A stretch of DNA of 64,000 nt from Mobula birostris (lineage: Eukaryota). The DNA is taken from assembly GCF_030028105.1 (NCBI RefSeq), contig NC_092383.1, forward strand, positions 87,501,921-87,565,920, written 5' to 3'. A model generated the notes under the pieces. It worked only from the letters and a program-made list of their open reading frames with translations, had not been told where the DNA came from and did no database searches. Shown piece by piece: positions 1,706 through 45,261 of the stretch. The position numbers were made by a program, and so were the translations under genes. Position 1 is the stretch's first letter; each line of letters starts with the position of its first letter.

Positions 1706-1784
1706 GGCCAATTCATTTCTGTGAAAATACTGTGACAGAAACCATGACAACTGCAGAAGGGGAAGGATCTTCATCAGATAAAAT
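1706..1784 (+). CDS. Gene A stalk exon (G)PIHFCENTVTETMTTAEGEGSSSDK
   Basis: ttttctttcaacag|gg...aaaat|gtaaag; phase 1 in, phase 2 out, with aromatic-x-C motif as in gene B stalk exon (KYSC vs HFC). Confidence 0.75.
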
Positions 1785-4700
1785 GTAAAGTATAATGTTC
1801 TCTCTACAGGCGCTTTCACTGCTACTGCTCCCAAATAGAGCCAGTTGGGAGAGAAATTTGTTTCCCTTTAACTGGCGTTAAACACGTTTGACATGATTAA
1901 CTGCAATGAAATCATGTTTTGGAAACTGAGTATTCCAGGTTTTCTTGTACAGGCGTCAAGCCTGAGAAAAAAGATAGAACATAGAAAACCTGGAAAATCC
2001 TACAACACAATACAGGCCCTTCGGCCCACAAAGCTGTGCCGAACATGTACTTACTTTAGAAATAACCCAGGGTTAACCAGAGCCCTCTATTTTGCTAAGC
2101 TCCATGTATGTATTCAGGAGTTAAAGGACCCTATTGTATCTGCTTCCACCACCGTCGCCAGCAGCCAATTCTACGCACTCTCCACTCTCTACATAAAAAA
2201 CTTTCCCCTGACATCTCCTTTGTTCCTACTTCCAAGCACTTTAAGACTGTGTCCTCTTGTGTTAGTCATTTCAGCCCTGGTAAAAAGCCTCTGACTATCC
2301 ACATGAACAATGCCTCTCATCATCTTACACACGTCTATCGGGTCACCTCTTATCCTATGCCGCTCCAAGGAGAAAAGGCCGAGTTCACTCAACCTATTCT
2401 CAGAAGACATGCTCACCAATCCAGGCACAATCCTTGTAAATCTCCTGTGAACCTTTTCTATAGTTTCCACATCCTTCCTGTAGTGAGGTGATCAGAACTG
2501 AGCACAGTACTCCAAGTGGTTTCTGACCAGGGTCCTATATAGCTGTAACAATACCTCTCAGCTCTTGAACTCAATGCCACAGTTGATGAAGGCCAATATG
2601 CTGTATGCCTTCTTAACCACAGAGTCAAACTGCGCAACAGCTTTGAGTGTCCTATGGACTTGGGCCCTAAGGTCCCGTTGATCCTCCACACTGCCAAGAG
2701 TCTTACATTAATACTATATTCTGCTATCATATTTGACCTACCAAAATGAACCACCTCACACTCATCTGGGTTGAACTCCATCTGACACGTCTCAGTCCAG
2801 TTTTGCATCCTATCAATGTCCCACTGAAACCTCTGACAGCCCTCCACACTATGAAAAACACCTCCAACCTTTGTGTCATCAGCAAATTTACTAACCCCTC
2901 TCTCCACTTTCTCATCTAGGTCACTTAAAAAAATCATGAACATAAGGGGTCCCAGAACAGATCCCTGAGGCACACTAAACTCCATGCAGAATATGACCTG
3001 TCTACAACCAGTCTTTGCCTTCCGTGTGCAAGCCAGTTCTGGGTCCACAAAGTAATGTCCCCTTGGATCCCATGCCTCCTTACTTTCTCAATAAGCTTTG
3101 CATGGGGTACCTTATCAAATGCCTTGCTGAAATCCATATACACTACACCTAATGCTCTACCTTCATCAATGTGTTTAGTCATATACTCAAAAAATTCGAT
3201 CAGGCTCGTAAGGCACAACCTGCCTTTGACAAATCCATGCTGACTATTCCTAATCATATTATGCCTATCCAAATGATCATAAATCTTGACTCTAAGAATC
3301 TTCTCCATCAACTTACCAACCACTGAAGTAAGACTCACTGGTCTAAAATTTCCTGGGCTATCTCTACTTCCTTTCTTGAATAAGGGAACAACAGGGAGGA
3401 GAAGATGGCGGCGCAACGCAACTCGCATCAGCCGCCCCGGTGGTGTTGTCTGATATTTGTCAAGTAGGGTGCCGTGCACAATCCTGATTTGATGGAGACG
3501 GATGTGAGAGCACGGAGGAACATCTGGTGAGACTTCTGAAATGCCTGCTTTGCTGCTGCTGCTGCTGCTACTGTGTGGTCCAGCAGATCAGGAGGAGAAG
3601 GCCGCGAGTCCTTGGCATTGCTTGTTGCTCGGCGGCCGGGGCAGGGTCGAAGCGTTTGGCAGAGGATGGTGCTCGGAGAGGCTGTGTCGGAGGGCTGGTT
3701 GGAGGCTCGAAGTTTTCGGACGGACTCAGGCTCCACTGCGGTCGGGTGCTTCCAATGGTGCTGCATCGGCAAGTTCGCGGTGCTTGGAGGTTCATGGCAG
3801 GGATAGTTTCTCCCTTCTACCGTCTGCGTGAGATGATGAGACTTTCGGGACTTTGGGACTTTTTACCGTGCCCATGGTCTGCTCTTTATCAAATTACGGT
3901 ATTGCTTTGCACTGTTGTAACTATATGTTATAATTATGTGGTTTTGTCATTTTTAGTCTTGGTTTGTCCTGTGTCTCTTGTGATACCATTCTAGAGGAAC
4001 ATTGTATCAGTTTTTTAATACATGCATTTCTAAATGACAAGAAACGAGGACTGAGGAATGAGGACACATAATCTCAAAAAAAATGCTCTCCCACTGAGAG
4101 ATCTGACACCTGACCAGATTCATTTCCCAGTACCAGATCAAGTACAGCCTCTCCCATTGTGGACTTTTCTACACATTCTGTCAGGAAACCTTCCTGAACA
4201 CACCAAGCAAACTTCACCCCATCTAAAATGCTCACTCCAAGGAGATGCCATTCAACATTGGGAAAATTAAAATCCCTCATCACCACAACCCTGTTATTAC
4301 TGCACTGTTCAAGGATCTATCTCCCTATCCACTCCTCAATGTCCCTGTTACTATTGGGTGGTCTATAAAAAACACTCAATACAGTTATTGACCCCTTCCT
4401 GTTTCTAACTTCCACCCACAGCAACTCAGTCAACAATCAATCCATGACTTCCTCCTTTTCTGCAACCATGACACTATCTCTAATCAGCAGTGCCATGCTC
4501 CCACCTCTTTTGCCTCCCTCCTGTCCTTTCTGAAATATCTAAAGCCTGGCACTCTAAGTAGCCATTCCTGCCCCTGAGCCATCCAAGTCTCTATAATGGC
4601 CAGAACATCATAGCTCCAAGTTCTTTGTTGATAATACTCCTTGAACATAGAACATAGAACATAGAATAGTACAGCACAGTACAGGCCCTTCAGCCCACAA

Positions 4701-7700
4701 TGTTGTGCTGACCCTCAAACTCTGCCTCCCATATAAGCCCCCACCTTAGATTCCTCCATATACCTGTCTGGTAGTCTCTTAAACTTCACTAGTGTATCTG
4801 CCTCCACCACTGACTCAGGCAGTGCATTCCACGCACCAACCACTCTCTGAGTAAAAAACCTTCCTCTAATACCCCCCTTGAACTTCCCACCCCTTACCTT
4901 AAAGCCATGTCCTCTTGTATTGAGCAGTGGTGCCCTGCATTAAAATAGACACATCTCAAACCATCTGCTGAGCCCCCTTCTCTATCACCTGCATACCCTC
5001 CCTCTCAAACTGCCTACGAGCTTTCTCTATTTGTGTGCCAACCTCCTCTTCCTCTGTCTCTTCATTTCGGTTCCCACCCCCAGCAATTCTAGTTTAAACT
5101 CTCCCCAACAGTCTTAGCAAACCTCCCTGCCAGGATATTGGTCCCCCTCGGATTCAAGCGCAAACCGTCCTTTATGTACAGGTCACGCCTGTTGCAAATG
5201 AGGTCCCAGTGATCCAGAGATCTGAATCCCTGCCCCCACTCCAATCCCTCAGCCACGCATTTATATTCCACCTCACTCTATTGCTATACTCACTGTGCAT
5301 GGCACAGGCAGTAATCCCAAGACTACTACCTTTGAGGTCCTGCTTCTCAGTTTCCTCCCTAAGTCTCTGTAGTTTGTTTTCAGTACCTCCTCCCTTTTGC
5401 TACCTATGTCATTGGTACCAATATGACCACAACCTCTGGCTATTCACCTTCCCACTTCAGGATATCGTGGACACGATCAGAAACATCCTGGACCCTGGCA
5501 CCTGGGGGGCAAACTACCATCTATGTTCCTTTACTGTGTCCACAGAATCGTCTGTCTGTCCCCCTATCTATAGAGTCCCCTATCACTGATGCCATCCTCT
5601 TCCTTTCCCTACCCTTCTGAGCCACAGGGCCAGACTCTGTGCCAGAGGCGTGGCCACTATTGCTTCCCCAACAGTATTCAAACAGGATTACTTATTGTTA
5701 AGGGGGACCGCCACAGGGGTACTATCTTGCCCTTCCCTCTTCTGACTGTTACCCAATTATCTGTCTCCCAAGGCCCCAGTGTGTCTACTTGCCTTTAGCT
5801 CCCCTTTGTCACCTCCTCACTTTCCCTGACCAGACGAAGATCATTGAGCTGCATCTCCAGTTCCCTAATCCTGTCCCTAAGGAGCTGCAGCTTGATGCAC
5901 CTGGTGCAGATGTGGCCATCCGGGAGGCTGGGAGTCATCCCACATCTGACACCCAGTACAGAACACTGGCCTCACAGACATACTCCCTATTCCTATTCTT
6001 CACAAGTAATTTACCTCCTCTCAACCCACTATTGCCGATGCCCCGTTGAGCCAAAGCCCTCCTACTCTGACTCTCTCTACACACGCTCCTCTGGCGCCCG
6101 CTCTATAAAGCTGTCTACTTTTTAAATTCTTCCCTCCGGTCTAACTTGCTGGCACCTCCGCATCTGCAGTTGTGCCTTGATCAAACTGCTGAAGAAAAAA
6201 CTCTCTCCTTTTAAATTCTTCCCACCGATCTAACTCACTGATATCCACGCACCTGCGCAGTCGTGCCTCGATTAAAAAAAGATCATTTTCTTACACAAGA
6301 TATTTAATAATTTAAGTTATGCAGTTGAAGCTCATGTTCTGAGTTATAAAGTCATTGTTATGTATTAGAAAAACAAGCCTCTCAGCCTGACTCATCCAAG
6401 CCAAACAAGAGTCCAGACAGCCATGAAACAAAAAAAGCCATTGAAGCCTTTCAAAGAAGAGGTTCGGCTACATGGTCAGCAATGCTGTCTGTCAGAGAAG
6501 AAGCCATTGATCAATCTTCTAATGCAACAGTTCTGATGAAATGTTTGCAAAGGACATGGTAGGGTTCCCAGATGGCCTGGACAATAGTTACTCTTCAACC
6601 AACATCACTATCATTGGCCGTGATCACTTTTCTACTTGGAGACCTTGCTGTGAGCAGATTGGCTTTATCAATTTCCCACACTGTCAACAGTGTCTAATGT
6701 TCATTTTCTGAGCTGCAGACATCCTGAGCTCATGAAAAATGCTGTGTAAATGCCAAACTTTACAAATGGCAAAGAATAAGTAAGGAACCAGGGCTGAACC
6801 TTTCCTATTCTTCACCACAGGCCCATTTACATAATTGTGCTCAGCGTCATTGGGATTCCTCTCACATTTTTTGTCGTTTGTCTACTTTGCTACCTGAAGA
6901 GAAAAAACAGGGGTAGGTTTCATTTTTCCTTTAAATATTTCATGATGAATATGATAGCTAGCTGCTGAATCTTAAGGAACTTGATTTGGTTGCAGTCAAC
7001 AAAAAGACAGGTTTAGAGTGCCAATGTGTTGGTTACAACACATGAATGAATGGTGTTGCTTCCACTGTAACCTGGTGACTCCATTATTCCTGAAACATCA
7101 GGCGATGGAATCTTACATCAACTGTGCAATGGCAGAGAACCACAAGGTTGTGTAGAAGAAAAATTTAGATGGTCTCACCTGTACTACTCAGTTTTGGAGA
7201 ATTAGCTGTAGTATTTGAAAGTGTATCTAACAAGCTGTTCCTCAGTACTGAGGCACTATCAATTACTCCAAAAGACTGGAAGTAGAGTAAATACTGAAAG
7301 GCTTCTACTAACAGTAAATAGTCCAACATCCATGCTGAGTATCTGCCCCAGACTGAGGAAGGAGCAGTGGCACAATCACCTTTATTCAGGGGTCGGTGGG
7401 AGGAGCCACAGGAGCAGTCAGCAGAGGGGCGTGTCCAGGCATGTCCAGACAGGTAACCCAGTTGCAACATATATATATTGTTTACCACAAGTACAACCTC
7501 CAATTAAATGCAATCATTTGGACAATGTATGTCTAAAAGTGTACTCTTGTGTAATTCTTAAAAAAAGATCAGGTGTATCTCTTACCAATCTACCACTCAC
7601 TGCATGTCACTGGCAAAATTACCCTGTTTTGATTGGAAAAAGTTGCCGTAGATTAAGTCAGTGATCTGGTTTATTGAGATGAACCTGAGATGGGCACCAC

Positions 7701-10582
7701 CGTAGCGTGGAGGTTAGCGTGACGTGATTACTCCTCGGGGCATTTTGGAGATCAGAGGTCCATTCCGGTGAAATTCTGTAAAGAGTCTCTACGTCCTCGC
7801 CATTGAATGTATGGGTTTTTCTAGGGTGCTCCAGTTTCTTCCCACAGTCCAAAGACAAACCAAGTATGTTATTTGGTCATTGTAAGTTGTCCCATGATTA
7901 GCTTTAGGTTAATCAGACTTGTCGGGGTTGCTGTGTCAGCGTGGCTTGAAGGGCTGGAAGGGCTTACTCTGTGGTGTATCACTAAATAAATCCATAAAGA
8001 AATAATCTTCTCTTTTAAATAGACTTTGTAAACTAGTGAAGCGAACTGTGAGTATCATGATCATCTGTGTGTTATTATCAAGTGAGGTAAAAAACAACAT
8101 GATCCTTTCTGACCATTGTGCAGTAACCAGAGCAGAGGTTTGCTCTGTGTGGAGAATCATTACTGTGTTGCAGCTGGGGTTCCCATGGTTCTGAGATTCA
8201 GTATGGGGGCCATGGTAACCTAGTGGTTCATGTGAAGCTATTACAGCTGGGGGTGTTCTGGAGTTTGCAGTTCAATTCCAGTGCCGTTCTGAAAGGAGTC
8301 TCTGTATGTCCTCCTTGTGGGATGCATGGATACACTCCAGGTCCTCCAGTGTCCTCCCACAGTCCAAAGAGGTACCAGGTAGGTGAATTGGTCAATGGAA
8401 ATTGTTCCATGATTAGGTTAGGGTTAATCTGGTTTGTCGGGGGTTGCTGGGTGGCGAAGGTCAAAGGGCTGCAGGGGCCAACTCTGTGTTGTATCAATCA
8501 ATCAATCAATAAATAAATACATGTTTATACCTGTAACAGCCATGGAATTTTTAGCAGTAATGTTGTATTTTTCAGCATCCAAGCCCAACCCATCTCACAG
8601 AGAAGGCAACAATGATACCCAGGTATGGACATGATGTATAAATTATCTGAATGTTTCAGAATGTTTAAAAATTGGATTACATGGGAGTTTACAGTTCATT
8701 CATCCCCACTAGTCCAGTCCAGTATTAATATTTTAAACAAACCTCTGAACACTCCTCTCATTGAATCCTATTGGCATATCCTTCTGGTTATTTGTTCCTT
8801 TCTCTTCTGCTCATCCTGATTTTCCTTAATTCTATTCATAATATTTTATGTGACTATTCTTCAAAATGGCTCCAGCCTTGATTATCATTACTGAATGGTG
8901 AAAAGTGAGGTTGGTCCTTTCTCTGCTGTTAGAGATGGAGCGTCCAATTGTGTAAATCTGTCTTTGTGTTCAATGACTTTGCAGTTAAATTTTTGGATAG
9001 TCCCTCAGCGTCTCAAACTCTGCAGTGAAATCAGAAAAAATTAGGGCAGGTCTATTCAGAACAATAAATTGGGGGTGGCACGGTAGTGTAGCGGTTTGCG
9101 TAACAAACTGGATCTCTCCGGTTGCTCTCTGTAAAGAGTTTGCGTGTTCTCCTTGGGACCTTGTGGGTTTCCTCCCACAGTCCAATGTTAGTATATTAAT
9201 TTGGTCACATGGGTTTAATTGGATAGTGCAGTTTGTTGGGCCAGAATGGCGTGTTACCAAGCTGTATCTCTAAATAAGTAAATATCTGTTCTGTGCTGAC
9301 CTCACCCACCCACTTTCTCACTCTACCCCTCAGTCCTGACACCAGTATGAATAGTCTATTGAGTCTTAGGTCTGCTATCAGCAGTCTTTGTTTGTGATAC
9401 CATCCACAATTTTCATCGTGCATGGTAACTGGAGGGTGGAGATTGTTGAAGGATTCTGCTCTGCCGTACATTTTCCCTTGAGGGCATCACTTTCTCTCCA
9501 AGAGCTGTACCCTCAGAGAACTGTGTGTTCCTCTTGTGCATCCTCCAGTGTTCTGAATCCCACCACCAATGTCAGTAGCTTCAGCTGCCCAAATCCCACC
9601 CTCTGGACAACTCCATGAACTCCTGCAATTCTGTCCTCTTAACTTCTGTTTGTTAGAAATACAGCAGAGTAACCGGTCCTTCCAGTCCACTGACCAGCCA
9701 ATTACACCCATGTGATCAATTAACCTGCTACCGCAAACCATTCTGACTGTAAACCCTAAAAGTATTGTAATTTGCCCAAATAATTCCCAAGTTTATTTTC
9801 AACCTCTTCTCTCAGTGAACCCCTGTGAAACACCAACTACCGATTTCATGTCTGGTGTTGTAAAGCAACATGCTGTTGTGGCACAGTTAGTATTAGGTCC
9901 TCACTAAGGATCACAGCCATTGAGTCATGAACTGTTATCAAACACTCTGGAAAATGAAATTTTACAAGCTGATTGAAAGGATCAGAGTTTATTTAAAAAC
10001 AGAAAACTGAGAGTGATCTGGTAGTTGTCTGAAAGAGTATCAAATTGTTTTATTGAATAAAGGTGTTTCCACTTACAGATGAGAGTAGAACTCAGGATAT
10101 AAGCATAAAATAGATAATAAAAACAAACAATCCCGGAAATTAAGACCATAGACCATGTGGTATAGGATCAGAGTTAGTCCATTTGGCCCACCAAGACAGC
10201 TCCGTCCTTCAATCACAGTTGGTTTATTTTCCCTCTCACCTATTATGCTGCCTTCTCCCTGTAGCTTTTCACAGCCTCAACTTTCACATTCATCGGTCAT
10301 AAAATAGATCTCGGAATTTATTTTTTATTTCAGGAAATGGCCACATTGGAAGAAAATGTCATTTATACAGATCTACACCATGTTCAAAACAATGAGGCGG
10401 CTGCCCAGTCGGCCAAAAATGAAACTGGAATTGTGTATGCAGATGTGAAATTTAAAAGGAAATCAAGAGCAGTCCACTCCATTACTGATGTGGACAACGT
10501 CACCTATGCAGATATCAAATTTCAAACCCATTGCGCAAAGCCCAAACGGAAAGCTTTCTCTCCTCCTACTCCACAGGAATAG
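1706..10582 (+). CDS. Gene A (5'-partial): inhibitory CD300/pIgR-like, MDIR-like Ig receptor; exons 1706-1784, 6821-6912, 8576-8622, 10334-10582
   Basis: Four exons with AG/GT sites and intron phases 1-2-1-0 identical to gene B; the TM exon (92 nt) and next exon (47 nt) match gene B in size; spliced frame is open to TAG at 10580-10582. Confidence 0.88.
3394..4075 (+). repeat. Non-autonomous interspersed repeat nested in CR1
   Basis: GC-rich start with AAGATGGCG (YY1-like) motif, (CTG)n run, AT-rich 3' end with A tail; interrupts CR1 homology. Confidence 0.55.
4643..4937 (-). mobile_element. 5'-truncated CR1 3' end nested in older CR1
   Basis: (GAACATA)3 tail on +; antisense RNFFTQRVVGAW-type 3' ORF2 end. 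Confidence 0.8.
6821..6912 (+). CDS. Gene A transmembrane exon (M)PIYIIVLSVIGIPLTFFVVCLLCYLKRKNR
   Basis: tttcctattcttcaccacag|g ... aggg|gtaggt; hydrophobic stretch then KRKNR stop-transfer; 92 nt like gene B TM exon. Confidence 0.9.
7692..7995 (+). mobile_element. V-SINE (HE1-like tRNA SINE)
   Basis: tRNA-like head plus V-domain gggtgctccagtttcttcccacagtccaaagac, ending in TAAA repeats. Confidence 0.8.
8205..8520 (+). mobile_element. Degenerate V-SINE
   Basis: ccagtgtcctcccacagtccaaag core and (ATCA)n(ATAA)n tail. Confidence 0.7.
8576..8622 (+). CDS. Gene A short cytoplasmic exon (A)SKPNPSHREGNNDTQ
   Basis: tgttgtatttttcag|ca ... cag|gtatgg; 47 nt, phase 1 to 0, homologous to 42130-42176. 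Confidence 0.85.
9072..9275 (+). mobile_element. Truncated V-SINE
   Basis: gggtggcacggtagtgtagcggtt head and gtgggtttcctcccacagtcc core. Confidence 0.7.
10334..10582 (+). CDS. Gene A terminal exon with three ITIM/ITIM-like motifs (VIYTDL, IVYADV, VTYADI)
   Basis: ttttttatttcag|gaa atg; 82 codons then TAG; Tyr at exon residues 11, 35, 58 as in gene B. Confidence 0.9.
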   Translation, partial: EMATLEENVIYTDLHHVQNNEAAAQSAKNETGIVYADVKFKRKSRAVHSITDVDNVTYADIKFQTHCAKPKRKAFSPPTPQE

Positions 10583-10632
10583 GAATAAGCTTGACAGGGT
10601 AATTATGTGGCTAGATCGAGGCATAAGAGTTA

Positions 10633-13622: not shown

Positions 13623-13627
<5 letters not shown>

Positions 13628-16200: not shown

Positions 16201-16779
16201 TTAATTTTCAGCAAACGAGAGAAATTTGTGGAGAGTGTTGAAATGTTAGCAGGACTGAGTGATAATACTCGTGAGGGGATCCTGGTGATTTGTGGGCTGT
16301 GTCAGAAAAGATAACATGTTAAGAATCATAGGAAATTACTTCCAGAAGCACAGGAGATGTAAACGAGAGCCACAGATGAAGCAGTCGGAACAGAGCTTGT
16401 TGGCAGTGGACGAACACCAGAACTCACAGCTGGAATTCATGTAAAGTTCACAGTTGTTGTCAGAGCCGGTTCCTGTAGACAGGCTTTCAGCAGTTTTCTT
16501 CAAGGTCCTTCCCACTCTGCTGAATCTGCTCACCCAGTGGGACATCCCAGTTGCTGCAGGGACCTGCACACTCTGGGAAATTCCTCCTTTCCCGGACCCT
16601 GCCTACAACCAGAACCACACACAAACTGCTTCAGGAACTCAGCAGACCAGGCAGTGTCTACAGAGAGAAATGGCAAGTTGACATTTTGGATTGGGACCCT
16701 TCAATGGGAGGTGTTCAAATCCAACAGCAGGACTTCTGGTTTCTCAAGGGACATTGTCCACTGACACCTGTATAATTTT

Positions 16780-17419: not shown

Positions 17420-17560
17420 ATGTAGTGTTTTCCCAGTGTATATGATGAATAAACTCTTCTTGGGCTTCCAGCCAGGTACAGGAATCATTTATAACTGACA
17501 TTTTGATGATGAATTTCCATCTTCATCAGGGATGATGCCGGGGCATGTCTAGTCTGGTGC
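17420..17560 (-). mobile_element. Second Penelope-type terminal repeat with hammerhead-like core
   Basis: Minus strand tccCTGATGAagatggaaattcatcatcAAAATGTC at about 17495-17532. Confidence 0.45.
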
Positions 17561-17565
17561 TATTT

Positions 17566-20775: not shown

Positions 20776-20812
20776 ATGTGGATTCCAGTTCTTCTCATCT
20801 GTTCACTGCCTG
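20776..20812 (+). CDS. Gene B exon 1, signal peptide [12 protein letters not shown]
   Basis: acaATGtgg...cct g|gtgagt; phase 1; joins V exon to give ...SLP-VSG-AVWA. Confidence 0.85.
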
Positions 20813-32800: not shown

Positions 32801-35800
32801 AGAGTCTCAGATGGCGACGAGAGGGTGTACAGGAGTGAGATATACCGACATGTTGAGTGGTGTCGTAGCAGCAGCCTTACACTCAACGTCAATAAGGCCA
32901 AAGAGCTGATAGTGACTTCAGAAAAAGTAAGATCAGGGTACACACATCATTCCTCGTGGAGGGATTAGAAGTGGAGAGAGTGAGCAACTTCAAGTTCCTG
33001 GGTGTTAATATCTATGAGGACCTAACCTGGTCGCAACATATCAATGCAGCTATAAAGAAGGCAAGACAGCGGCTATATTTCATTAGACGTTGGAGCAGGT
33101 TTGGTATATCACTTAAAAGACTGGAAAATTTCTGCAGATGTACCGTGGACAGCATTCTGTCAGACAGCAACACTATTTGGTATGGGGTGGTGGGGAGGGG
33201 GGCTGCTACTTCATAGGGTCGAAGAAAGCCACACAGAGTTGGAAAATTAGTCAGATCCATCACAGGTGCTAGCCTTGATAGTATCCAAGACATCTTCAAG
33301 GAGCAGTGCCTCAAAAAGGTGGCGTCCATAGTTAAGCAGCCCCACTGCCTTCTTCTCATTATTACCATCAGGAAGTAGATACAGGAGCCTGAGGCACCCA
33401 GTCAACAGTTCAGGAACAGCTTCTTCCCTTCTCCCATCCAATTTCTGAATGGACATTGAACCCATGAACACTACCTCACTATTTTTTCTTTTTGCACTAC
33501 GTATTTAATTTAAATATTTAATATACATACACATACACACACATATAGATTACTTAGTAAAGGCATCCGTTAGTCTTGCGAGACCATGGATCTGCGCCTG
33601 GAAAGTCTTCACTCCCCAGGGCGCAGGCCTGGGCAAGGTTGTATGGAAGACCAGCAGTTGCCCATGCTGCAAGTCTCCCCTCTCCACAACACCGATGTTG
33701 TCCAAGGGAAGTGCAAGAGCTGATACAGCTTGGCACCAGTGTCGTCACAGAGCAGTATGTGATTAAGTGCCTTGCTCAAGGACACAGCACGCTGCCTTGG
33801 CTGGGGCTCAAACCCACGACCTTCAGATCATTAGTCGAACGCCTTAACCACTTGGCCACGTGCCCACACATAGATATTACTATTACCGTAATTCACAGGT
33901 TTTTTTGTTCTATATTATCATGTATTGCATTGTTCTGCTGCCGCTCAGTTAACAAATTTCACAACATATGCTGGTGATATTAAACCTGATTCTGATTTAC
34001 GGAAGTATGTTCTCTTCAGTTTCAGGTGCGGTGTGGGCAGAGAAATATCGAAGAGGAGTTGTGGGAAGAGCGATCGCAATCAATTGTTACTATGAAGCAA
34101 AGTACCGCTCACACACAAAGTATTGGTGCCATGGATGGACTCTCCAATGTTCAGTTTTAGTGGAAACAAAGGGGCAACACGGACGGAGTGGACGAGTGTC
34201 AATCACAGAGAACCTGAAACAGAGAATATTTACTGTTACTATGGTGGATCTTCGCTCTGGAGATACAGGATGGTACAGCTGTGGAATTACAACACCAGGT
34301 CTCGATCCGATGTTTCATGTACATCTACAAGTATCTGATGGTAGGTTACTCAGTGATTGATTTTATGTCTTCACTGATGTCAGATCCATGTTTTCTCTGA
34401 GTGGTCATGGTAGCATTGATATCCCAAAGCTCAGCAGCATTGCAGAGTCCTACGAGGAAAATGCAGGAGTTGGGAAACCATATGCATGTTGATCTCACCC
34501 AATCTAATGTTCCACATATACCTAAAAGTATCTGATGGTACGTTTATCAGGGATTGACTTTCTGTCCCCCACTTAAATATCTGATCTGCGTCTTCACTGC
34601 GAAGGGTCAGGACAATTCTCATATTCTGAGGGTCCACTGCAGTGTTGAGTCCTGAGGGGAGTGGGCAGGTGTCGGGGAAACCCCACTCATTGTTCTCACC
34701 CATTGCAGTATCAGACCCACTGAATGGACACCGATTTCCAGTGAGAGGCTTATTACAATTTTCCTACCTCTGAACCGTATGAAATGCCAGTCTGTCAGAG
34801 GTTTGCATTCAGACTAAAAATAATAATCCAGCCATAACAGATCAGAGAGAAACTTATTGCTCATGGGCTAATTACCTGAAAACCATAAAAAGGGAATCAT
34901 TTCCCAGAGCTCAAAAGACTGCATTCAATTCTTACAAAGCAGACCAGTCCAATCCCTGGTCTATCTCAGGGATCAATCACTCATTCCCAACTCCCACCCA
35001 CCTGTATCCCATATATGTGCTCTGAGCCCCCAACCCCAGCACCCACTGACCATCCACTCTGAAGCATCCAGCCTCTTCATCCATGGGAATCAGATTAAAT
35101 GAAATCTGATGAGATCTTGTCCCATCAGAATCCTTTTGTTTTTCTTTCTCCATCTTGCCTTTTTACCCCTTCTTATTCCCCTCCACTGCCCTCATGCCCA
35201 GATTTTTGCCCTCTGGTGCCTAACCTCCTTATTTTATGGTATGGTCTACTGTCTCCTCCAATCAGACTCTTCCTTCTTCAAACCAATGCCTCTTCTGCCT
35301 AAGACCTCCCAGTTTATCACACCATTCTCTTGCCCCATCCCGCCTTCTTACCTTCCACCTCTCACCTGGATTAACCTGTCAGCTTATGCTCTTTCCTCTC
35401 TCCCCACCCTATTATTCAGTCCTCCACTCAATCGTTTCATTCCTAATGATGGGCCTCAGCCTGAAACATCATACATGTATTTTCCTCCAGAGGTGTTGAC
35501 TGATCTGCTGACTTCCTCCAGCTCCTTTGTCTGGACATCCACCTTCCTGAGATTTCTGGGGTTCGCCCACTGCCTCCAAGCATACAGCAGCACCAAGGGT
35601 TTCCCTTGCTGTTGCAGGTCACAGAAACCAAACACTTTCTCCCAAAACCCTCCAAGCATGTGACAGATATCTGACCATTTCTTCCCCTCACATTCAGTTC
35701 TTCCAGGACTCTCTCCAGTTTGTTCCAATTCCCTGTCTCCACTGGAGACTTGCTCCCTGCTGCCGAGAGAGATTGAAACCCTGATTTTCACACTGACTCA

Positions 35801-38800
35801 TCCTCGTTGTCATCACTGCATTCCTGATCTGGAGTCCTTCTGTGTTCTGGGATAATGTCAGACATGACAGTTCGGGCAGCTGGGAGGATGCAGAGACATA
35901 GCGAGGCAGTTGAGCTGCTGAGATTCCAACCTGGTGAGGTATAGAAATGCTGAAAATTGGAGAGTGATTTTCAGATATTCACTTGACTGTTTGGTCCTTT
36001 CCCACAGAACCCGTGTCTGTTCCTGTGCTTCAAGTTCTGTCACCAGCAAATGAATCGTGTGTCGGGGGCTCAGTGTCAGTTGACTGTGAGTCTGTTCAAG
36101 GATCCCTTCCAATTCAGTACTCATGGTATGAAAAGACCTCATCTGTGGATTCAAAGATCTCTGACACCAGTAAAATGGATCTACATTGTCAATCCTTCAA
36201 ACACCAGCACCATCAATATTACTGCAGTGCCTCAAATACTCGTGGAGTGAAATCCAGCGAAATAGTCAATGTGGCAGTGTTCAACAGCACTTGGGACTGC
36301 AGTTATCAGCTGCAATTCAGTCACACTGGTGAGTGGTGGATTGAATAATGGACACTTTTGGGTGTTTCATGGAGTGACTACTTTCGAGATGTTGTGGTGT
36401 TGGAGCTGTGTTAACACAGGTCCTGACAGGATTTATACTTGTGGAGTATGAACCATCTTTTGTTTTAGAAAATGAGTCCATTACCAAAAGCAACCCCACC
36501 CCCCCATATCTACCACCCCAGCACCCACTTCTCTCTGGCCTGCTATTGTTAACATGGTGTTTATGTATCTCACCCTATTAAAATGAAACAGGAAGTACAT
36601 TACTCATTACAAAACAAGATTGACAATATTTGCTCCATTTGGATTCTACTTACTTAATTTTATTATTTATATATGTATATTTCTGAATGGATATTGAACC
36701 TACGAACACTAACTAACTATTGAATTTTATTTCTTTATTTCAACAGAAACTAAATATTCCTGTGTAAATAATTCTGGCCACTCCAAAATTACAGAAAATT
36801 CCAAAGACAATTACGACAAAGACAATCAATCCCCTTACCCTGAAAGGTATAATTTTCTCTGTGCTTCTGTATGTAATGTAATTGGGGGAAAGAATTCATT
36901 CTTTATTTCGCTGGTGATTACTGCCTGTGGGACTACTGACTTCAACCTAAGCCTCAACATTTGAGCTCAATATAACCAATGCCCCCATAAACAGTTAAAG
37001 TGAAACGACCAAAATCATACTTACTTCTTGAAAAGTTTGTAATAGTGTTGGCATGAAAAATGAAAATCGTGCAATAATTTGCAAAGTAGCTCATCAGAAT
37101 GAAAATGGTGCTGGGTTTTACAACACACTGCTGTGGTATGTTTGTTGTTGAGAAATAAAAGCAAGTTCCTCAATTTGCTGTCAGTCAGACGGTGTTCTTG
37201 CAGCCTTCACTATGACTTTGAAGCCATGGCATAGCCCTTGAAATCACTTATGAACAACACATTGCAGTGTTGTCCCAATTCTCAAAGCCAAACATTGTCA
37301 GAATCATCGGCATATGTCATGAAATTTATTGTTTTTGTTGCAGCAGTACAATGGAATACGTAATAATAGAGAAACAAAACTGTGAATTACAGTATATATA
37401 TTAAATAGTTAAATAAGTAGTGTAAAAGCAGAAATAAAAGAGGAGTGAGGTAGTGTTCATGGGTTCAGTGTCTATTCAGAAATTGGATGGCAGAGGGGAA
37501 GAAGTTTTTCCTAAACCATTAAGTGTGCGCCTTCAGGCTTCTGTACCTCCTCCCTGATGGTAGCAATGAGAACAAGGCAAGACCTAAGTGATGGAGGTCC
37601 TTAACGATGGACACCGCCTTCCTGAGACATGGCTGTTGAAGGTGTCGTGGATACTACAGAGGCTAGTGCTCATGACGAGCTGACCAGTTTACAGCTCTCT
37701 GCAGATTACAGTGATCCTGTGCGGTAGACCCCCCCCCACCCCCGTACTAGACCATGATGCAGGCAGGTAGAATGCTCTCCATGGTACACCTGTAGAAATT
37801 TTTTGAGTGTTTATGGAGACATACCGAACCTTCTCAAAGTCAGTGGAGTCCATTCAAGATGAGTCTGTTGTCATGTGCAGAAGCACAGTGAGTTAGACAG
37901 AGTTAACCCCATCACCCCCACTGGGGCATAGGCCATTGACAGTGTGTGCTAGAGTCCTCTGTCCTGGGCAAGTCTTTCAAGTTGTACCCAGGTATAGCCC
38001 ATCTTCTTGGTTTCAGTTTCAAGATTGCATCACCAGGCGTTCTTTGGCCATCTTCTCTTCTGCTTTCCCTAGGGATTTCATGTTAACACTTTCCTGGTGA
38101 TGTCGGTACTTGGCTTATGTAGAAGGTTGATTGACAATATGACTTCCATTGACTTGCAGCTCTCACCACACAACTTCACATCTCTTCGAATCGAAGATCC
38201 TTCCTCAGCCAGGGATGAGGACTTTAGAGCTTCTATTAGTGTTTCTGTAGCTCTGGGTTTTTACAGGATGAGTTTGCTAGCTTCATGCCCAACCCTCCTC
38301 CTTTTGCAGCTGGGCTTGGTACCAGCCATGGCAGAGTTACAGTGAGGTACAAATACAATGAAAAGCCTGCTTACAGATACTTAGGCACACATAAAAATGT
38401 CATCTCCTAAGAAGTACCCCTGGGTGGTGAGAACACAAGGGCACTGTAAGGTATCCTCAGTAGGTCATGGTAATCCGCCTTCTGGATCTGTTATCGATGT
38501 TCACCATAGGGAACAGAGTTTGACCAAGCACCACAAAGGTAATGTCCAAACCAGCATTAAACTTTGTAGAGGTGGACATGGTGATCACTTTGAAGTGAGA
38601 GCAGGTTTTAAGCAAATACAGTTTTTCCCTTTAAGTACTCAAGATGCAAGTGTTTGCAGTAAGGTTTGTAGATCTTGCCCTGGTGTCTCATCACCGCAGT
38701 TCCACTGTCCTATTTCTCACACACAATATCTCAAATTTTTTAAATTATTTTAATTTTTTTCTGGGAAATTTGAATTCATTTTGACTTCTTTAAACTTGCA

Positions 38801-41800
38801 AGCAACGCACACAGAAATTGGCAGTTTAGGCAGCATCTATGGAAGAGAGTACACAATTGATGTTTCGGGCTGAGACCCATTTCTACAACTAAGAAGGAAG
38901 GGGGAAAATGCCTGAATAAAAAGGTGTGAGGAGGAAATAGGGGTTGGAAGGTGATAGGTGAAGCCAGGTAGATGGGAAAGGTCAAAGACTACCCATGAAT
39001 TATAATATGGTGCATCCCACAATATAGTTACATTCATATTACAAAATGAACAGAAGTATTGACCTTAAATGCAATATGCAAACAGCATGTACATATTTAC
39101 ACATCCCCAATACTAATGAAATTGAATATTCCACCATGTACGGTGGGAAAGGCACCAAAAAGGCAACTGAGAGCATGAACATGGCTTAGGACCATTATGA
39201 GAATATACCAGGGAAGACAGAGAGGTGCGTTAACTCAGCTCAAAGACAGCGGAGTGACAAGGCAATGTTTGTGTGTATGTAAATGCACATCTGGAAGGAG
39301 TGCGCCTCGCTTACCGAGTGCTCTCTGTCACACACGCCATAGGGGACTTCTGTCACACGCACCATAGTGGGCTTCTCTGCTGAGATTAGAGCTGGCTTTT
39401 GCAATCATGATCAACGTGGCTTGTCCAAGTCCAGCTGCAAATGCTTGGGTAACACTCACAAAATCTGGGAGGAACACAGCAAGTCAGGTGGCATCTCTAG
39501 TTGTACCGTGGAGAGCATTCTGACAGGCTGCAACACCGTCTGGTATGGGGGGTGGGGGGCTACTGCACAGGACCGAAAGAAGCTGCAGAAGGTTGTAAAT
39601 CCAGTCAGCTCCATCTTGGGTACGAGCCTACAAAGTACCCAGGACATCTTCAGGGAGCGGTGTCTCAGAAAGGCAGCGTCCATTATTAAGGACCCCCAGC
39701 ACCCAGGGATGCCCTTTTCTCACTGTTACCATCAGGTAGGAGGTACAGAAGCCCGAAGGCACACACTCAGCGATTCAGGAACAGCCTCTTCCCCTCTGCC
39801 ATCCGATTCCAAAATGGACATTGAATCTTTGGACACTACCTCACTTTTTTTAAATATACACTATTTCTGTTTTTGCACAATTTAAAACATCTATTCAATA
39901 TACATGTACTGGAATTGATTTATTTGTTTATTTATTATTATTATTTTATTTGTTATTATAATTTTTTTCTCTGCTAGATTACGTATTGCATTGAACTGCT
40001 GCTGCTAAGTTAACAAATTTCACGCCACATGCCGGTGATAAAAAACCTGATTCTGATCTAAAGGGGGCAGTAAACTGTCAACATTTCAGGCCGAGACCCT
40101 TCAGCAGGGAGGTCACCATGCTCAGCAGTGCTTTTCAGATAAAAGAAACTTCCAATCAGATAAACAAAAGACACCTCACAAACTCTTTACAAAGGACTGG
40201 AGTTAAAGTTTTTATTCCATTTTCTTGAAAGTTCAAAGTAAGTTTATTGTCAAGGTGTGTCCATGTCACTACGTACAACCTTGAGATTCATTTTTTTTAT
40301 TGCACATTCACAGTGGGTACATAGAAACACAACAGAATCATTGAGAAACTATACACAAAGATGAACAAACAACCAATGTGCAAGAGAAGACAAAGTACAC
40401 AAAATGCAAAAAATAAATAATAATAAAACAAAAAATAAACAAATAAATAATACTGAGAACATCAGAATCACATTTAATATCATCGGCATACGTCGTGAAA
40501 TCTGTTAACTTCATTGGAGCACTACGTTGCAATGCATAATAATAGAGCAAAAAACTGAATTACAGATATATATATATAATAATTAAATAAATAGTTCAAA
40601 AACAAAACTGAAGAAGTAGTGAGGTAACGTTCATGGGTTCAATGACCATTCAGAAATTGGATGGCAAAGGGGAAGAAGCTGTTCACTGAGTATGTGTCTT
40701 CAGGCTCCTGTACTTCCTTCCTGATGGTAGCATTGAGAAGAGGACATGTCCAGGGTGATGGGGGCTCTGAAAGATGCATGCCTGATAGAGTCCTTGAAAG
40801 TGATTCTATAGATTGTGACTTATTGGATTATAATTCAAGATTTACAAAGGAGAAAAAATTGCAGATGATCTACACAACATTTACACTTTAACCAACATTA
40901 TTATTGCTGATCATTACCTGGTTTGTGGAGCCTTTCTGCAAACAGTTTGGCTGCTGCATTTCTGCACTCCAACAATGTCTACACTTCATTTGCTTGGACT
41001 GCACACATCCTGAGTTCATGGAGGGAGTCGTGTATGCGCCAGATTTTCATTCTTCAGCAATGGTCAAGGGTTAATGGCTGACTGTTTCTTGTCCTCTGCA
41101 CCACAGGTTACCTAAAGTAATTATGCTCAGCATCACTGGCATTGTTCTCATGATGATCTTCACCGGCCTACTTTTGTATCTAAAGTGTAAAAACAGGGGT
41201 GAGTTTCTACTTCTCTTTTCATCATTTTATGATAAACTGTATCTGATCCGACGCTAGCTCCCTAGGCCTGAGTCCACTTAGTAGTAGTAGTATCTGATAG
41301 CTGTCTTCAAAATTACTTGATAGAAAGGTACAAGATAAAAAGAGGCATGCATTGAGTGGATAGCCAGAGACGGTTTCTCTAGTGCAAAAATGGCTAATAC
41401 CATAGGGCATAATTTTAAGGTGATTGGAGGAACTCATAGTGGGATGTTAGAGGTAGATTTTTTATACAGAGAGTGGTGGGCGCATGGAACATACAGCCAG
41501 GGTTGGTGGTAGAGACAGATACATTAGGGATGTTTAAGTGACTTTAGATAGGCACGTGGATGATAGAAAAATGGAGGGGAAGGTTGGATTGATCACAACT
41601 TGTCGGCTGAAGAGCCTGTTCTGTGCTGTGATGTTCCATTTTCTTAGCTTCATGTTCTAAAATGTAATATGATTGCAATTGGATCTTGTCAAATACAACT
41701 CAGAGTTGAGGTGTTCTTCTCTGGGTAAATGAAGCATTAAAGAATAATGGAAGTGCTACTACAAATGGGCGAGAGCTCTTCAAAACATCACATGACACAA

Positions 41801-44800
41801 AATCACCTTGCGTGTGGAATGGCAGAACTACGTGACAACCAGGAAGCTGGGAATCTTGAATCGCTGCTCATATGATATCACTTTTATTCCAGAATCATTC
41901 TGATGAACAGATGGGTGTTAATGTGATTAATGGGCAAATGATTGACCAGATGTGGAATCAGTACGATGTTAAAGATTTGATTTGCAGAAATTTGTGATCA
42001 GGACAGTTTTCCTGGAACGAAATTCCCCTGCAATTTGGAGGTGCACTATTTAAGATACTGCATGCAACACGGGGATATTTCAGCATTTATCTAACATTCC
42101 CATTACAAAGATAACCTTGTATTTTCTAGACTTCAAGTACAACACGTCTCAGAGAAGAGGCAGCAATGAAACTCGGGTAAGATGTGAAGTATGAATTTTC
42201 TGAATGCTTGAAAATTTATAAAATCAGATGACAAAGACCATTCAGCCCCAAAGGTTCCCAGTGTTAATACTATATACAAATCTCCAAACATCATTCTTTT
42301 TTGAACTGTATCATTACATACCACCAGTTCTTTCTCCTTCTTGTGCTTATCCAACTTTTCCTTAATGCATCCATGATATTTTATTTGACAGATTTTCAGA
42401 GTGGCTCCGTTCTCTAATTTGTTGCCGTTAACAGATGCAAGGTGTGACTGGCCCTGGCTCTAATTTTAGAGATGACAATTTACTATCGCTGTAACCTTGT
42501 CTTCTTATTTTCAATTAATATTTCAGTTGATATTTAATATATTCCATCCATATCCCAAACATTTATGAAAGATCAGAGAAAGTAAATGGGACGTCACAAG
42601 AAACAGCACGGTAACAGATCCTCTCTGCCCAACAAGTTCATCGTTCACTGTTTCAAAATCTCAATTCAATAAAATACCCTCTGATTGTCCAAGGGAGAAC
42701 AGCACAAATTTGTGTTCTGTGGGTGAGAGCAGAAACAAGGCTATAAAAAATCATAAGTGCAAGAGATCCTGCAGATTCTGGAAATCCAGACTAACACACA
42801 TAAAATATTGGAGGAATGCAACAGGTCAGGAAGCATCTATGGAAGTGGAACACAGTTGACGTTTCAGGTCAAGACCTTTCCCCAAGAGTAGAAGAAAAGG
42901 AGAAGCTAGAATAATAAATCAGATTAGAAAGCCGAGATGAACTTCCATTCATGAACTGTGATTAATGTTCTGGAGCAGATGGGCAGTGATTTGGCCACCA
43001 CTGCTGGCCCACCAACTGGAGAGTGTCGTGGTTAAGGGTCGAAACACTCGGTGAAGGTTGGGAACCACCTGGCTGAAGGCTACAGTTATCTTATAAGGTA
43101 ACTGGAGAATGCACCCTAACAGGTGTATGTAACAAGTGATGGAAGTAGTTGAAGTAAATATTACGGAGTTTTTGAGGGAAAGCTAAATAAGCACATCAGG
43201 GAGAGAAAAATACATACTAATTCAGCTGAATAGCTGGAGTTCAAATTAAGTACAATTACTATAGAAGACCATAAGATGTTGGAGCAGAATTAGGCCATTT
43301 GGCCCATTGAGCCTGTTCCGTATATACTAACAAGTTCTTGCTAAGTTGAGTTCACTTTGAGAACTTTTTCTCAATGTTATGAACAACAAGTTTCCCCAGT
43401 TCAAGTAACCCACTCTGCCTGTATTCCCTACTCACTTGCACTGATCCACCCAGGTGTCTCTCCTATTGTTCACATTTTCCACCCAGCCACCAACACAAGG
43501 GATTTTGCAGATGCTAGGAATCCATAGTAACACAAACAAAATGCTGGAGGAACTTAACAGTTCAGGCAGCATCTGTGAAGAAGAATAAACAGTGGATGTA
43601 AAGAGCTAAGCCCCTTCAGCAGGACCACTCAAGCATCTCCCCTTCCACTATCTTTGCTACTGAGACTCTTCTTCCTGTCTATTCACCCATAGGTCTCTCC
43701 ACCTGGGTTCAACTTCCTTAACTCCTCACCCACCTGGCTCTATCTACTAAATACCGATCTCCTAGTCTGGTTCTAGATAACACTTACCAATATCTGTCTC
43801 GACCCTTCCCACTCCCCTTCCCCATCTGGATATTTCCCACCAAACATTTGAAGTCTCTGGGCCTGTACTCACTGGAGTTTTAGAAGAATGAAGTGGGAAT
43901 TTCATTGAAATCTATGGAATATTGAAAGGCCTAGGTAGAGTGGACATGTAGACGATGTTTCTAGCAGTGTGGGAGTCAAGGAACAGAGGGCACAGCCTCA
44001 GAAAACAAGGGCATCCCTTTAGAACAGAGTTGAAGAGGAATTTCTTCAGCCAGAGAATGGTGGACCTGTGGGATTCATTGCTACAGATGGCTATGGAGGC
44101 CAAGTTATTAGGTACATTTAAAGCAAAAGTTGATAGGTTCTTGATTATTTATTTATCGAGATACAGTGTAGAATAGGCTCTTCTGGCTTTTTATACCACG
44201 CCGCCCAGCAACCCCAGATTTAACCATAACCAAATCATGGGACAATTTACAGTGACTAATTAACCTACCTACCAGTACATTTTTAGATTGTGGGAGGAAA
44301 CTGGAACACCCAGAGGAAACCCACATAGTCACAGGGAGAACATACAAACACCTTATAGACAGTAGTGGGAAGGAATAAGGACGTCAAAGGTAATGGGTAG
44401 AAGGCAAGAGAATGCAGTTAAGGGGGATAATAATTCAGCCTTGACAGAATGGCAGAGCAGGCTTGATGGGCTGAATGGCCTAATTCTACTCCAATTCTGC
44501 TACAATCTTATTACTTTCTTCTCCTTACTGTGTGTTTCCTATTATCCAGCAGCCTCAGTTTCAGTAATCCCCACTCCTCTTTTCCACCTGACCCCATCTG
44601 TTCATCATTACCCCCTGAATTGTTTGCTCCATCACGTACCTGCCTCTGTCTCACTCATCCCTCTTACATCTTTGTACTAGCTATTTTCCCTCTACGTTCC
44701 CACTCCTGATACAGATTCTTAATCCAAATATTGAACATCCATTTACTCCCATCAGCACAGGTTTTTAATCCAAATCATTGAACATCCTTTTACCCCCGTT

Positions 44801-45261
44801 GATGTTGCTCAATCTGCTGAATTCTTCCAGCAACATTTTTGTTGTTCCAGATTCCAACGTCTGCAATCACTCTTGTCTCTGTTGGAGAGCAGCTCTGTGA
44901 TCAGTTTTTGCTCAGAACAGCGGATTACACTTCTCGCATTCATCAGGCGTAAAAGTTATATTGCTTTTCTTGTATTTAGGAACTGGCATCTTTGGAAGGG
45001 AGCACCATTTACACAAATCTGCATCAACGTCAGAGCAAAAGGGCAGCTGCCTTGCTGGCGAACGATGATGGCGGGATCATGTATTCAGCAGTGGAATTTC
45101 AAAGGAAGTCGACAGTAAGGCACCCGGTAACCAATGAGAAGAATGCTATCTACACTAATGTTGATTTTCAAAACAACTCCCCATTGGATGGTGGGAAAGC
45201 TCCCTCTACAGGCACTCTGCAGGACCCTAAGCAGACAATTTATGCCTCTGTTGCTCCTTAG
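20776..45261 (+). CDS. Gene B: complete CD300/pIgR-like V + FcR-like C2 receptor with ITIM/ITSM tail (MDIR-like), 399 aa; exons 20776-20812, 34020-34340, 36008-36328, 36747-36846, 41107-41198, 42130-42176, 44980-45261
   Basis: All introns GT-AG with compatible phases (1,1,1,2,1,0); 37+321+321+100+92+47+282=1200 nt with no internal stop. Confidence 0.9.
22073..23130 (-). mobile_element. Two CR1 3' fragments (about 22073-22480 and 22745-23130)
   Basis: Antisense MRGDLI...MRGIDR...RGNFFTQRV; ATAGAAC-type tails. Confidence 0.8.
23225..24030 (-). repeat. Non-autonomous interspersed repeat
   Basis: Minus strand starts acttctggcaagacagtggcg (LINE-5'-like); GC-rich body with no RT motifs. Confidence 0.4.
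24030..26935 (-). mobile_element. Cluster of decayed CR1 fragments
   Basis: Antisense [40 protein letters not shown] with frameshifts. Confidence 0.82.
26983..28052 (+). mobile_element. Solo LTR with internal tandem repeats
   Basis: TGTCAT...ATGACA inverted termini; flanks gcttt/gcctt (5-bp TSD, 1 mismatch); about 60-bp unit x3 at 27270-27460 and short CCTAG/CCAGG repeats. Confidence 0.75.
29397..32614 (-). mobile_element. CR1 LINE nested in Rex/Babar (ORF1 end, APE, RT, 3' tail)
   Basis: 293-aa RT ORF 29813-30694; APE motifs [16 protein letters not shown]; ORF1 esterase [11 protein letters not shown]. Confidence 0.92.
33551..33868 (-). mobile_element. tRNA-derived SINE with CORE-like middle and RTE-like 3' tail
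   Basis: Minus: tggccaagtggttaagg (A box), gggtttgagccc (B box), gtgtccttgagcaaggcacttaa (CORE-like), ggtctcgcaagactaacggatgcc 3' stem-loop. Confidence 0.65.
34020..34340 (+). CDS. Gene B exon 2, V-type Ig domain of CD300/pIgR/TREM type
   Basis: INCYY...KYWC-x6-C...RVSI...[17 protein letters not shown]; ttctcttcag| and g|gtaggt, phase 1-1. Confidence 0.93.
35085..35540 (+). mobile_element. Penelope-like pLTR remnant with decayed hammerhead
   Basis: cCTAATGAtgggcctcagcctGAAACatc at about 35442-35470, followed by the typical ctgctgacttcctccagc end. Confidence 0.6.
36008..36328 (+). CDS. Gene B exon 3, C2-type Ig domain resembling FcR/FCRL domains
   Basis: EPVSVPVL...[22 protein letters not shown]...YYCSASN; tttcccacag| and g|gtgagt, phase 1-1. 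Confidence 0.92.
36747..36846 (+). CDS. Gene B exon 4, stalk (E)[32 protein letters not shown]
   Basis: ttctttatttcaacag|aa ... gaaag|gtataa; open frame, phase 1 to 2. Confidence 0.8.
37290..40810. mobile_element. Intron 4 TE patchwork: Rex/Babar 3' ends (37290-37830 minus, 39470-40057 plus, 40330-40810 minus), RTE-like 37850-38350, PLE remnants 38790-38990 and 40060-40112
   Basis: [28 protein letters not shown] tails; PLE motif aggccgagacccttcagcagg. Confidence 0.65.
41107..41198 (+). CDS. Gene B exon 5, transmembrane (R)[30 protein letters not shown]
   Basis: ctctgcaccacag|g ... aggg|gtgagt; 92 nt; no charged residue in the hydrophobic span. Confidence 0.9.
42130..42176 (+). CDS. Gene B exon 6 (D)[15 protein letters not shown]
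   Basis: ccttgtattttctag|ac ... cgg|gtaaga; 47 nt, phase 1 to 0, homologous to 8576-8622. Confidence 0.85.
43845..44500 (+). mobile_element. CR1 3' fragment interrupted by an antisense V-SINE (about 44145-44370)
   Basis: [24 protein letters not shown]; gggaggaaactggaacacccagaggaaaccc. Confidence 0.75.
44980..45261 (+). CDS. Gene B exon 7, tail with TIYTNL, IMYSAV, AIYTNV, TIYASV
   Basis: ttttcttgtatttag|gaa; 93 codons then TAG; aligns without gaps to the gene A tail for 82 aa. Confidence 0.92.
   Translation, partial: ELASLEGSTIYTNLHQRQSKRAAALLANDDGGIMYSAVEFQRKSTVRHPVTNEKNAIYTNVDFQNNSPLDGGKAPSTGTLQDPKQTIYASVAP

Follow-up and report, generated by a model that had tools for sequence, protein, structure and literature searches.

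A probable segment of a modular domain immune-type receptor cluster in Mobula birostris, with a ray counterpart of skate MDIR2

To our knowledge, modular domain immune-type receptors, or MDIRs, are among the few germline-encoded innate immunoglobulin (Ig) receptor families recorded from cartilaginous fish, which are the oldest jawed vertebrates, and we know of nothing on their ligands and signalling. Here we analysed a 64-kb stretch of contig NC_092383.1 of Mobula birostris (64,000 bp, hereafter the window), which contains no N runs and in which two receptor genes lie head to tail on the forward strand. Gene A is represented by its 3′ part, beginning with the first base of its stalk exon at position 1706, and gene B ends with the last base of its stop codon at position 45261. 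We consider the window to be part of a ray MDIR cluster that comprises the 3′ end of the inhibitory gene A and the complete gene B, the counterpart of skate MDIR2; we put the probability of this reading, including the signalling proposal made below, at about 0.82. A preliminary description of this DNA had called the locus functionally uncharacterised, which is true; the locus is nevertheless of no new kind, since the MDIR family has had its name and description since 2006 (Cannon et al., Immunogenetics 58:362, cited in PMC3031540).

MDIR2 of the clearnose skate (Rostroraja/Raja eglanteria) is built in the order seen in gene B: a leader, a CD300-type V domain, a C2 domain, a stalk, an uncharged transmembrane (TM) span and a tail ending in an IYASV motif. 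It differs in that its first tail tyrosine has been lost and that an insert of 14 residues stands ahead of the third, all four tyrosines being retained in gene B, and the TM and tail regions of the two proteins are only 46–47% identical. CD300f/CLM-1 and CD300a share with gene B the V fold, the extra disulfide, a tail with immunoreceptor tyrosine-based inhibitory motifs (ITIMs) and an uncharged TM span; whereas gene B adds a C2 domain and a stalk, their ectodomain consists of one V domain alone, and their tails cannot be aligned with that of gene B; the relation is a likeness rather than an established orthology. FCRL5 and FCRL4 match gene B in the C2 domain, and ITIM-type signalling tails are also typical of FCRL proteins, but their ectodomains consist of C2 domains only, whereas the N-terminal domain of gene B is a V domain of the CD300 type. 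The V domain of gene B also resembles D1–D5 of pIgR, the name given to most relatives by automatic annotation; in contrast to the V-C2 ectodomain and the tail of gene B, which combines ITIM and immunoreceptor tyrosine-based switch motif (ITSM) elements, pIgR has V-type domains in succession with no C2 domain between them and a tail with transcytosis signals rather than ITIMs. The features of an MDIR that are found in gene B are collinear similarity, clade placement, a V domain of the CD300/pIgR/TREM type, a C2 domain combined with it, and an ITIM tail with an uncharged TM span.

Structure, domains and family of gene B

Gene B consists of seven exons (Table 1) that join into 1200 nt and translate without a stop into 399 aa, laid out as leader, CD300-type V, FCRL5-like C2, stalk, uncharged TM and ITIM/ITSM tail, the layout of a type I membrane protein. 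A first pass over the open frames of the forward strand had found a V-type Ig exon at about 34.0 kb, a C2-type exon at about 36.0 kb and tyrosine-rich C-terminal exons at 10.3–10.6 kb and 45.0–45.3 kb. When the window was searched with pieces of gene B a second TM exon and a second tail were recovered, and the gene B domains detected no second V or C2 exon in it. Profile hidden Markov models (HMMs) built from relatives (427 V, 191 C2 and 32 TM-tail segments) and run on all six frames agreed with this: over the whole 64 kb they detected a single V and a single C2 exon, both belonging to gene B, and no more than two TM exons and two tails. By profile scan and alignment, the window contains no activating type of receptor (with a GRWLLF membrane span, as in MDIR5).

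The V exon of gene B passes the Pfam V-set model (E 7e-9), and its best single-domain matches in the PDB are CLM-1/CD300f (E 3e-20) and CD300a/c. The pIgR match (E 1e-38) is summed over D1–D5 and is higher only because several domains add up; compared domain by domain, CD300f scores above pIgR D1. A structure model of the V domain, made from a 28-sequence alignment (mean predicted local distance difference test score, pLDDT, 96.7), has mouse CD300lf as its best structural neighbour (template modelling score 0.93, root mean square deviation 1.3 Å, 41% identity), followed by human CD300a and CD300f and then by pIgR D1, NKp44 and TREM, with the pIgR fold reaching a template modelling score of about 0.81–0.84. 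Four cysteines are conserved in this domain, and the extra pair, typical of the CD300-type group, is nearly invariant in the relatives. For the C2 domain the matches are FCRL5 (E 5e-42, summed over six stretches) and FCRL4 (E 2e-4), with Pfam Ig_3 and Ig_2 just under their cut-offs.

An exhaustive, profile-free search with the V domain of gene B as the query returned 2226 relatives, 98 of them below 1e-30. The closest relatives come from stingrays, mantas, sawfish, skates, sharks and one chimaera, and are named in RefSeq as polymeric immunoglobulin receptor-like, Fc receptor-like protein 5, CMRF35-like molecule, cell surface A33 antigen-like or uncharacterized; MDIR2, MDIR3 and MDIR5 of the clearnose skate are among the relatives matched. 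Residues 1–398 of gene B align collinearly with residues 1–411 of skate MDIR2 (54% identity, E 7e-157), and gene B is 78%, 79% and 69% identical to single proteins of Hypanus sabinus, Hemitrygon akajei and Pristis pectinata, respectively. Its probable one-to-one counterparts are H. sabinus LOC132381029 (XP_059806118/119), a 359-aa protein of H. akajei (P0173) and P. pectinata LOC127580796 (P0202), which are annotated not as MDIRs but as 'cell surface A33 antigen-like' or 'uncharacterized'. The tail of gene B is 79% identical to that of XP_059806118. No protein at least 90% identical to gene A or gene B was found in the protein collection searched.

The preliminary description had called both genes MDIR-like and had named a phylogeny as a way of checking this. 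In a maximum-likelihood tree of the module from C2 to the C-terminus (41 rows, 300 columns; supports given as ultrafast bootstrap/Shimodaira–Hasegawa-like approximate likelihood ratio test, SH-aLRT), the order was (skate MDIR2 group, (Pristis, (gene B, (Hypanus, Hemitrygon)))) with supports of 96/91, 100/97, 100/100 and 100/99. Since gene B thus lies within the MDIR2 clade, which follows the species order, it belongs to the MDIR2 orthologue group as the ray member; the length of its branch is ordinary, and its lineage is placed just outside Dasyatidae and within the split from sawfish. The position inside the clade supported at 96/91, the collinear match over 398 aa and the matches to MDIR3 and MDIR5 together bear out the MDIR-like assignment.

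The leader of gene B is encoded far upstream of the V exon. Joined to the acceptor before position 34020, the exon at 20776–20812 yields the family consensus ...LPVSGAVW; no further V exon was detected between 20.8 and 34.0 kb by the six-frame profile scan, and intron 1 would accordingly be 13.2 kb long. A second leader-like stretch occurs at 33968–34019 (+), where an in-frame ATG is followed by 20 hydrophobic residues that run into the V exon without an intron; it is weakly like the family leader and could serve as an alternative start, or else have arisen from the polypyrimidine tract by chance. That gene B in fact starts at this ATG, with the leader fused to the V domain and the exon at 20776 left as the orphan of a lost gene, appears very unlikely. 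The open hydrophobic stretch itself, the weak alignment of the relatives' leaders to it and the lack of a V exon between 20.8 and 34.0 kb would fit such a start, but the Hemitrygon counterpart begins with MWIPILLICSLPVSG, exactly the product predicted from the 20776 exon and the 34020 acceptor, the acceptor at 34019/20 is used in paralogue transcripts (see below), and the sequence directly upstream of 33968 is a SINE-like repeat and not a promoter-like region.

In the Hypanus models the signal peptide is replaced by a 100-residue extension from a far-upstream exon. A single-copy block at 16366–16689 (+) has 67% protein identity with this extension in XP_059806118/119 (E 5e-36); its frame is open for 133 codons, it has ACG where Hypanus has ATG, and its donor would be GC. 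The block may be a conserved alternative first exon of gene B, perhaps non-coding, or a regulatory block.

Gene A, the signalling tails and the extent of the cluster

Within the window gene A begins with its stalk exon, which is 72–85% identical to the stalks of Hemitrygon akajei XP_072886821 (P0012, residues 439–467) and of Hypanus models. XP_072886821 is a 597-aa protein with a V-C2-V-C2-stalk-TM-tail layout, and it matches the window by residues 439–597 only, at 1699–1785, 6822–6923 and 10331–10585 (70–76% identity; 76% between its tail and the last exon of gene A). Closest to gene A is a 948-aa model of Mobula hypostoma (P0248), with 79% identity over the part from stalk to tail and, by eye, approximately 88% in the tail exon; overall, the gene A tail is 75–79% identical to those of multi-domain ITIM receptors of Hemitrygon and Mobula. 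The 47-nt cytoplasmic exon was chosen from five stop-free 47-nt AG..GT candidates in its intron; it has a good polypyrimidine tract and lies in a blastn block (8563–8873) that matches 42117–42408 of gene B. An AATAAA signal at 10898 lies 316 nt downstream of the stop codon. Between 1706 and 6800, which is mostly LINE fragment, neither motif heuristics, tblastn with the gene B domains, Pfam nor the six-frame profile HMMs detected Ig exons of gene A. Because the Hemitrygon protein and the M. hypostoma model match the window with their 3′ part only, the Ig exons of gene A should lie upstream of the window. Judged by these two relatives, which alone provide the combination of V and C2 domains for a gene whose Ig exons are outside the window, gene A is expected to be a multi-domain form.

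The two genes were described beforehand as arranged head to tail with matching intron phases and exon sizes and with tyrosines at matching tail positions, and all of this was reproduced on the forward strand. Every internal exon border of both genes is AG/GT; the intron phases agree (stalk 1 to 2, TM 2 to 1, 47-nt exon 1 to 0, last exon 0), as do the lengths of the TM exon (92 nt) and of the following cytoplasmic exon (47 nt); and tyrosines stand at positions 11, 35 and 58 in both tails, with the residue that opens the last exon taken as number 1, and with a fourth at position 88 in gene B. Neither membrane span contains a charged residue, as had also been stated, and a lysine of gene B sits at the outer edge of the membrane. 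In protein sequence the tails are 40% identical (tblastn E 1e-15) and the TM exons 50%, and the DNA around the TM and 47-nt exons is 65–67% identical over 300–390 nt; the likeness of the two genes is therefore homologous and old, not a chance match. By tree placement, the TM-tail module of gene A belongs to a separate, well-supported stingray/manta clade with Pristis as sister, a batoid clade that is sister to that of MDIR2, and skate MDIR3 to a third clade. The A/B split is thus at least as old as the split between sawfish and stingrays and is probably as old as that between skates and rays, which accounts for the strong divergence noted in the preliminary description.

The tails were read against the consensus [SIVL]xYxx[IVL] for ITIMs and TxYxx[VI] for ITSMs. 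Gene A has three canonical ITIMs and lacks a terminal ITSM, and gene B has one ITIM, one ITSM and two near-motifs, which together with the uncharged TM spans is consistent with the earlier proposal of inhibitory or switch-type receptors. An alignment of both tails with those of skate MDIR2 and MDIR3, ray and sawfish relatives and three sharks revealed four tyrosine motifs in a fixed register, three ITIM-like and a terminal ITSM-like one of the form Q-x-I-Y-A-[ST]-V, a cassette that is conserved from sharks to rays. The tyrosines at 11, 35 and 58 are therefore a trait of the family and not peculiar to genes A and B. The cassette ends before the fourth motif in gene A and in its Hemitrygon and Mobula relatives (P0012, P0175 and P0248), whereas the Pristis relative of the gene A clade and most other members of the family keep the terminal ITSM; its absence from gene A and these stingray/manta relatives is a lineage-specific loss of one signalling motif. 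At the other end of the cassette, the first tyrosine is missing in skate MDIR2 and MDIR3, and the Hypanus counterpart of gene B has a serine in its place.

The cluster had been thought to reach beyond the window, in agreement with the upstream position predicted for the Ig exons of gene A and with the finding that the listed paralogues of the relatives are all on one chromosome-sized contig per genome. In Hemitrygon we counted about 26 paralogue clusters at 90% identity among the matches listed. This single-contig arrangement fits a large single locus extending well beyond the window.

Transcript contigs, repeats and the weight of the evidence

Transcript evidence was sought in contigs from three runs that carry the same species label and were only guessed to be RNA, placed on 33500–37500. 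Contig depth was in the hundreds over the V exon and in the tens over the C2 exon, and the introns were almost without depth, except for short patches at 35.4–35.8 kb and 36.6 kb and repeats at the ends, a pattern that looks like transcript data. As the contigs differ from the window at 3–10% of positions, they derive from paralogues. One of them joins a diverged V end to 36007/8 with an intervening ...TRFNLELTVND, close to the ...TRFNLELNVND at the V1-C2 junction of XP_072886821, and in a second the end of a V exon leads back into 34019/20, the arrangement of a paralogue with a V-V tandem. These joints support the predicted exon borders and not the expression of gene B itself.

Gene B might be an unexpressed or decaying copy and not a working receptor, which we regard as very unlikely. 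The three runs contain no gene-specific transcript, no close relative was found at the 90% identity level, and the introns of gene B are filled by LINE fragments; its 399-codon frame is nevertheless intact across seven exons with canonical borders, all four V cysteines are present, the tail motifs are conserved, and a gene of ordinary branch length has one-to-one counterparts in three other batoid lineages. It is barely credible that the tails of A and B belong to one long transcription unit, in which a larger receptor would have the gene A tail for an alternative 3′ end: RefSeq models of relatives do include very long forms (870–1254 aa, with many V domains), and in Hypanus the model of the gene B counterpart spans 63 kb and takes in far-upstream exons, of which one is conserved at 16366–16689, but gene A has its own stop codon and downstream AATAAA, these are followed at 20776 by a canonical leader exon that has an ATG of its own, and the start codon of the Hypanus extension is ACG in the window.

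Several points weigh against our reading of the window as part of an MDIR cluster with an inhibitory gene A and a complete, MDIR2-like gene B. The listed contigs are 90–97% alike to the window, and none is at least 99% identical to gene B. The ectodomain of gene A is not visible in the window, the leader-to-V splice of gene B over 13 kb is a predicted and not an observed one, and two of the four gene B tyrosine motifs are off-consensus. A literature search, which did not cover the 2006 description itself, returned no binding, phosphorylation or expression data for any MDIR.

The coordinates of the exons are collected in Table 1 together with those of other features. The window is rich in reverse-transcriptase (RT) fragments of long interspersed nuclear elements (LINEs), and blocks within 2600–5500 and 30000–32600 are approximately 80% identical copies of one LINE family. 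Beside LINE copies, segments at 2276–2425 (+) and 29717–29836 (+) correspond to a piece that is translated as a 50-residue internal segment in a Hypanus model (P0193, 70% identity) and in a Hemitrygon model (P0230); in those two genomes the piece is a repeat that has been exonised or else an artefact of the annotation. Just upstream of the V exon of gene B, at 33540–33900, lies a repeat resembling a tRNA-derived short interspersed nuclear element (SINE), over which the summed contig depth of the three runs is about 10,000–70,000, and many loose contig ends fall at 33995–33997.

Table 1. Positions of gene A and gene B exons and of other features in the 64-kb window (LTR, long terminal repeat; UTR, untranslated region)
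Feature	Position	Strand	Length (nt)	Remarks
Gene A stalk exon	1706-1784	+	79	Phase 1 in, 2 out; AG at 1704-1705, GT at 1785-1786
Gene A TM exon	6821-6912	+	92	Uncharged span, then KRKNR; AG/GT; profile E 4e-9
Gene A 47-nt cytoplasmic exon	8576-8622	+	47	AG/GT; similar to the gene B 47-nt exon
Gene A last exon	10334-10582	+		ITIMs VIYTDL, IVYADV, VTYADI at Tyr 11/35/58; stop TAG
Gene B leader exon	20776-20812	+		GT donor, phase 1; like the family leader and upstream 5′ UTR in many relatives
Gene B V exon	34020-34340	+	321	CD300-type V domain with extra Cys pair
Gene B C2 exon	36008-36328	+	321	FCRL-like Ig domain
Gene B stalk exon	36747-36846	+	100	Phase 1 in, 2 out; AG/GT; like the counterpart stalks in Hypanus and Hemitrygon
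Gene B TM exon	41107-41198	+	92	Uncharged span, then KCKNR; AG/GT; 90% identity with the Hypanus and Hemitrygon counterparts
Gene B 47-nt cytoplasmic exon	42130-42176	+	47	AG/GT; 12 of 16 residues agree with the counterpart protein
Gene B last exon	44980-45261	+		TIYTNL, IMYSAV (ITIM), AIYTNV, TIYASV (ITSM); stop TAG
Non-LTR RT fragment	2461-3587	-		Pfam RVT_1
Non-LTR RT fragment	17536-19035	+		Pfam RVT_1; open 500-codon frame
Non-LTR RT fragment	29816-30697	-		Pfam RVT_1
Non-LTR RT fragment	55344-56923	+		Pfam RVT_1
Open frame	59227-59988	-		254 codons; no Pfam match

Conservation of the V domain and proposed function

The V domain of gene B is 73–79% identical to those of stingrays, 80% to that of sawfish and 74% to that of skate MDIR2. 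The corresponding values for the C2 domain are 85–87%, 79% and 63%, those for the TM region 90%, 53% and 47%, and those for the tail 77% (Hypanus), 65% and 46%; the tail of the 359-aa Hemitrygon model, which differs at its end, has 38% identity with gene B. The V domain is also 77–78% identical to those of activating-type Mobula paralogues that have an arginine in the membrane span. The V tip is thus the most conserved part of these receptors over long distances and between signalling types, and variation lies in the number of domains, the stalk and the signalling end. The preliminary description had called the locus fast-evolving, which finds only partial support: the TM and tail regions diverge, but the V domain stays 73–80% identical, and gene B has one-to-one counterparts across batoids.

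The analysis demonstrates how the genes are built, what their domains are and to which family they belong. From motif rules and by analogy with mammalian CD300a and CD300f, we infer a signalling mode, a kind of ligand and a cell type for these receptors. The V domain would bind a ligand at the cell surface, whereupon Src-family kinases would phosphorylate the ITIM tyrosines; the phosphorylated ITIMs would recruit SHP-1, SHP-2 or SHIP, and activating signals in leukocytes would be damped. The C-terminal ITSM, kept by gene B and lost in the gene A clade, could add adaptor-dependent switching, and activating members of the family with a charged membrane span would be the counterparts of the inhibitory forms. 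Because the V domain is so constant, a conserved ligand (for example a membrane lipid, as for CD300) would be more attractive than a variable pathogen or an MHC-like ligand. It is possible, and we propose it tentatively, that a tip V domain kept nearly the same in activating and inhibitory paralogues alike and on both sides of the skate-ray split recognises one conserved, non-polymorphic ligand of this kind, read out via an ancient ITIM-ITIM-ITIM-ITSM cassette that has been trimmed by lineage. Such constancy of the V domain, beside TM and tail regions that drop to about 46% identity, is the opposite of what is usual in pathogen-driven paired receptors.

No new kind of system is revealed by the window. 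It provides a base-accurate gene model for a ray counterpart of MDIR2 in a family whose members are labelled 'A33 antigen-like', 'pIgR-like' or 'uncharacterized', which should be of use for annotation and for the choice of constructs in ligand screens. Evidence from it also speaks for great age and conservation of the tyrosine-motif tail cassette, and for a V domain under conservation instead of fast evolution. What it adds is new detail on a known family: a distant leader exon, a four-tyrosine cassette with lineage-specific trimming and a conserved V tip.

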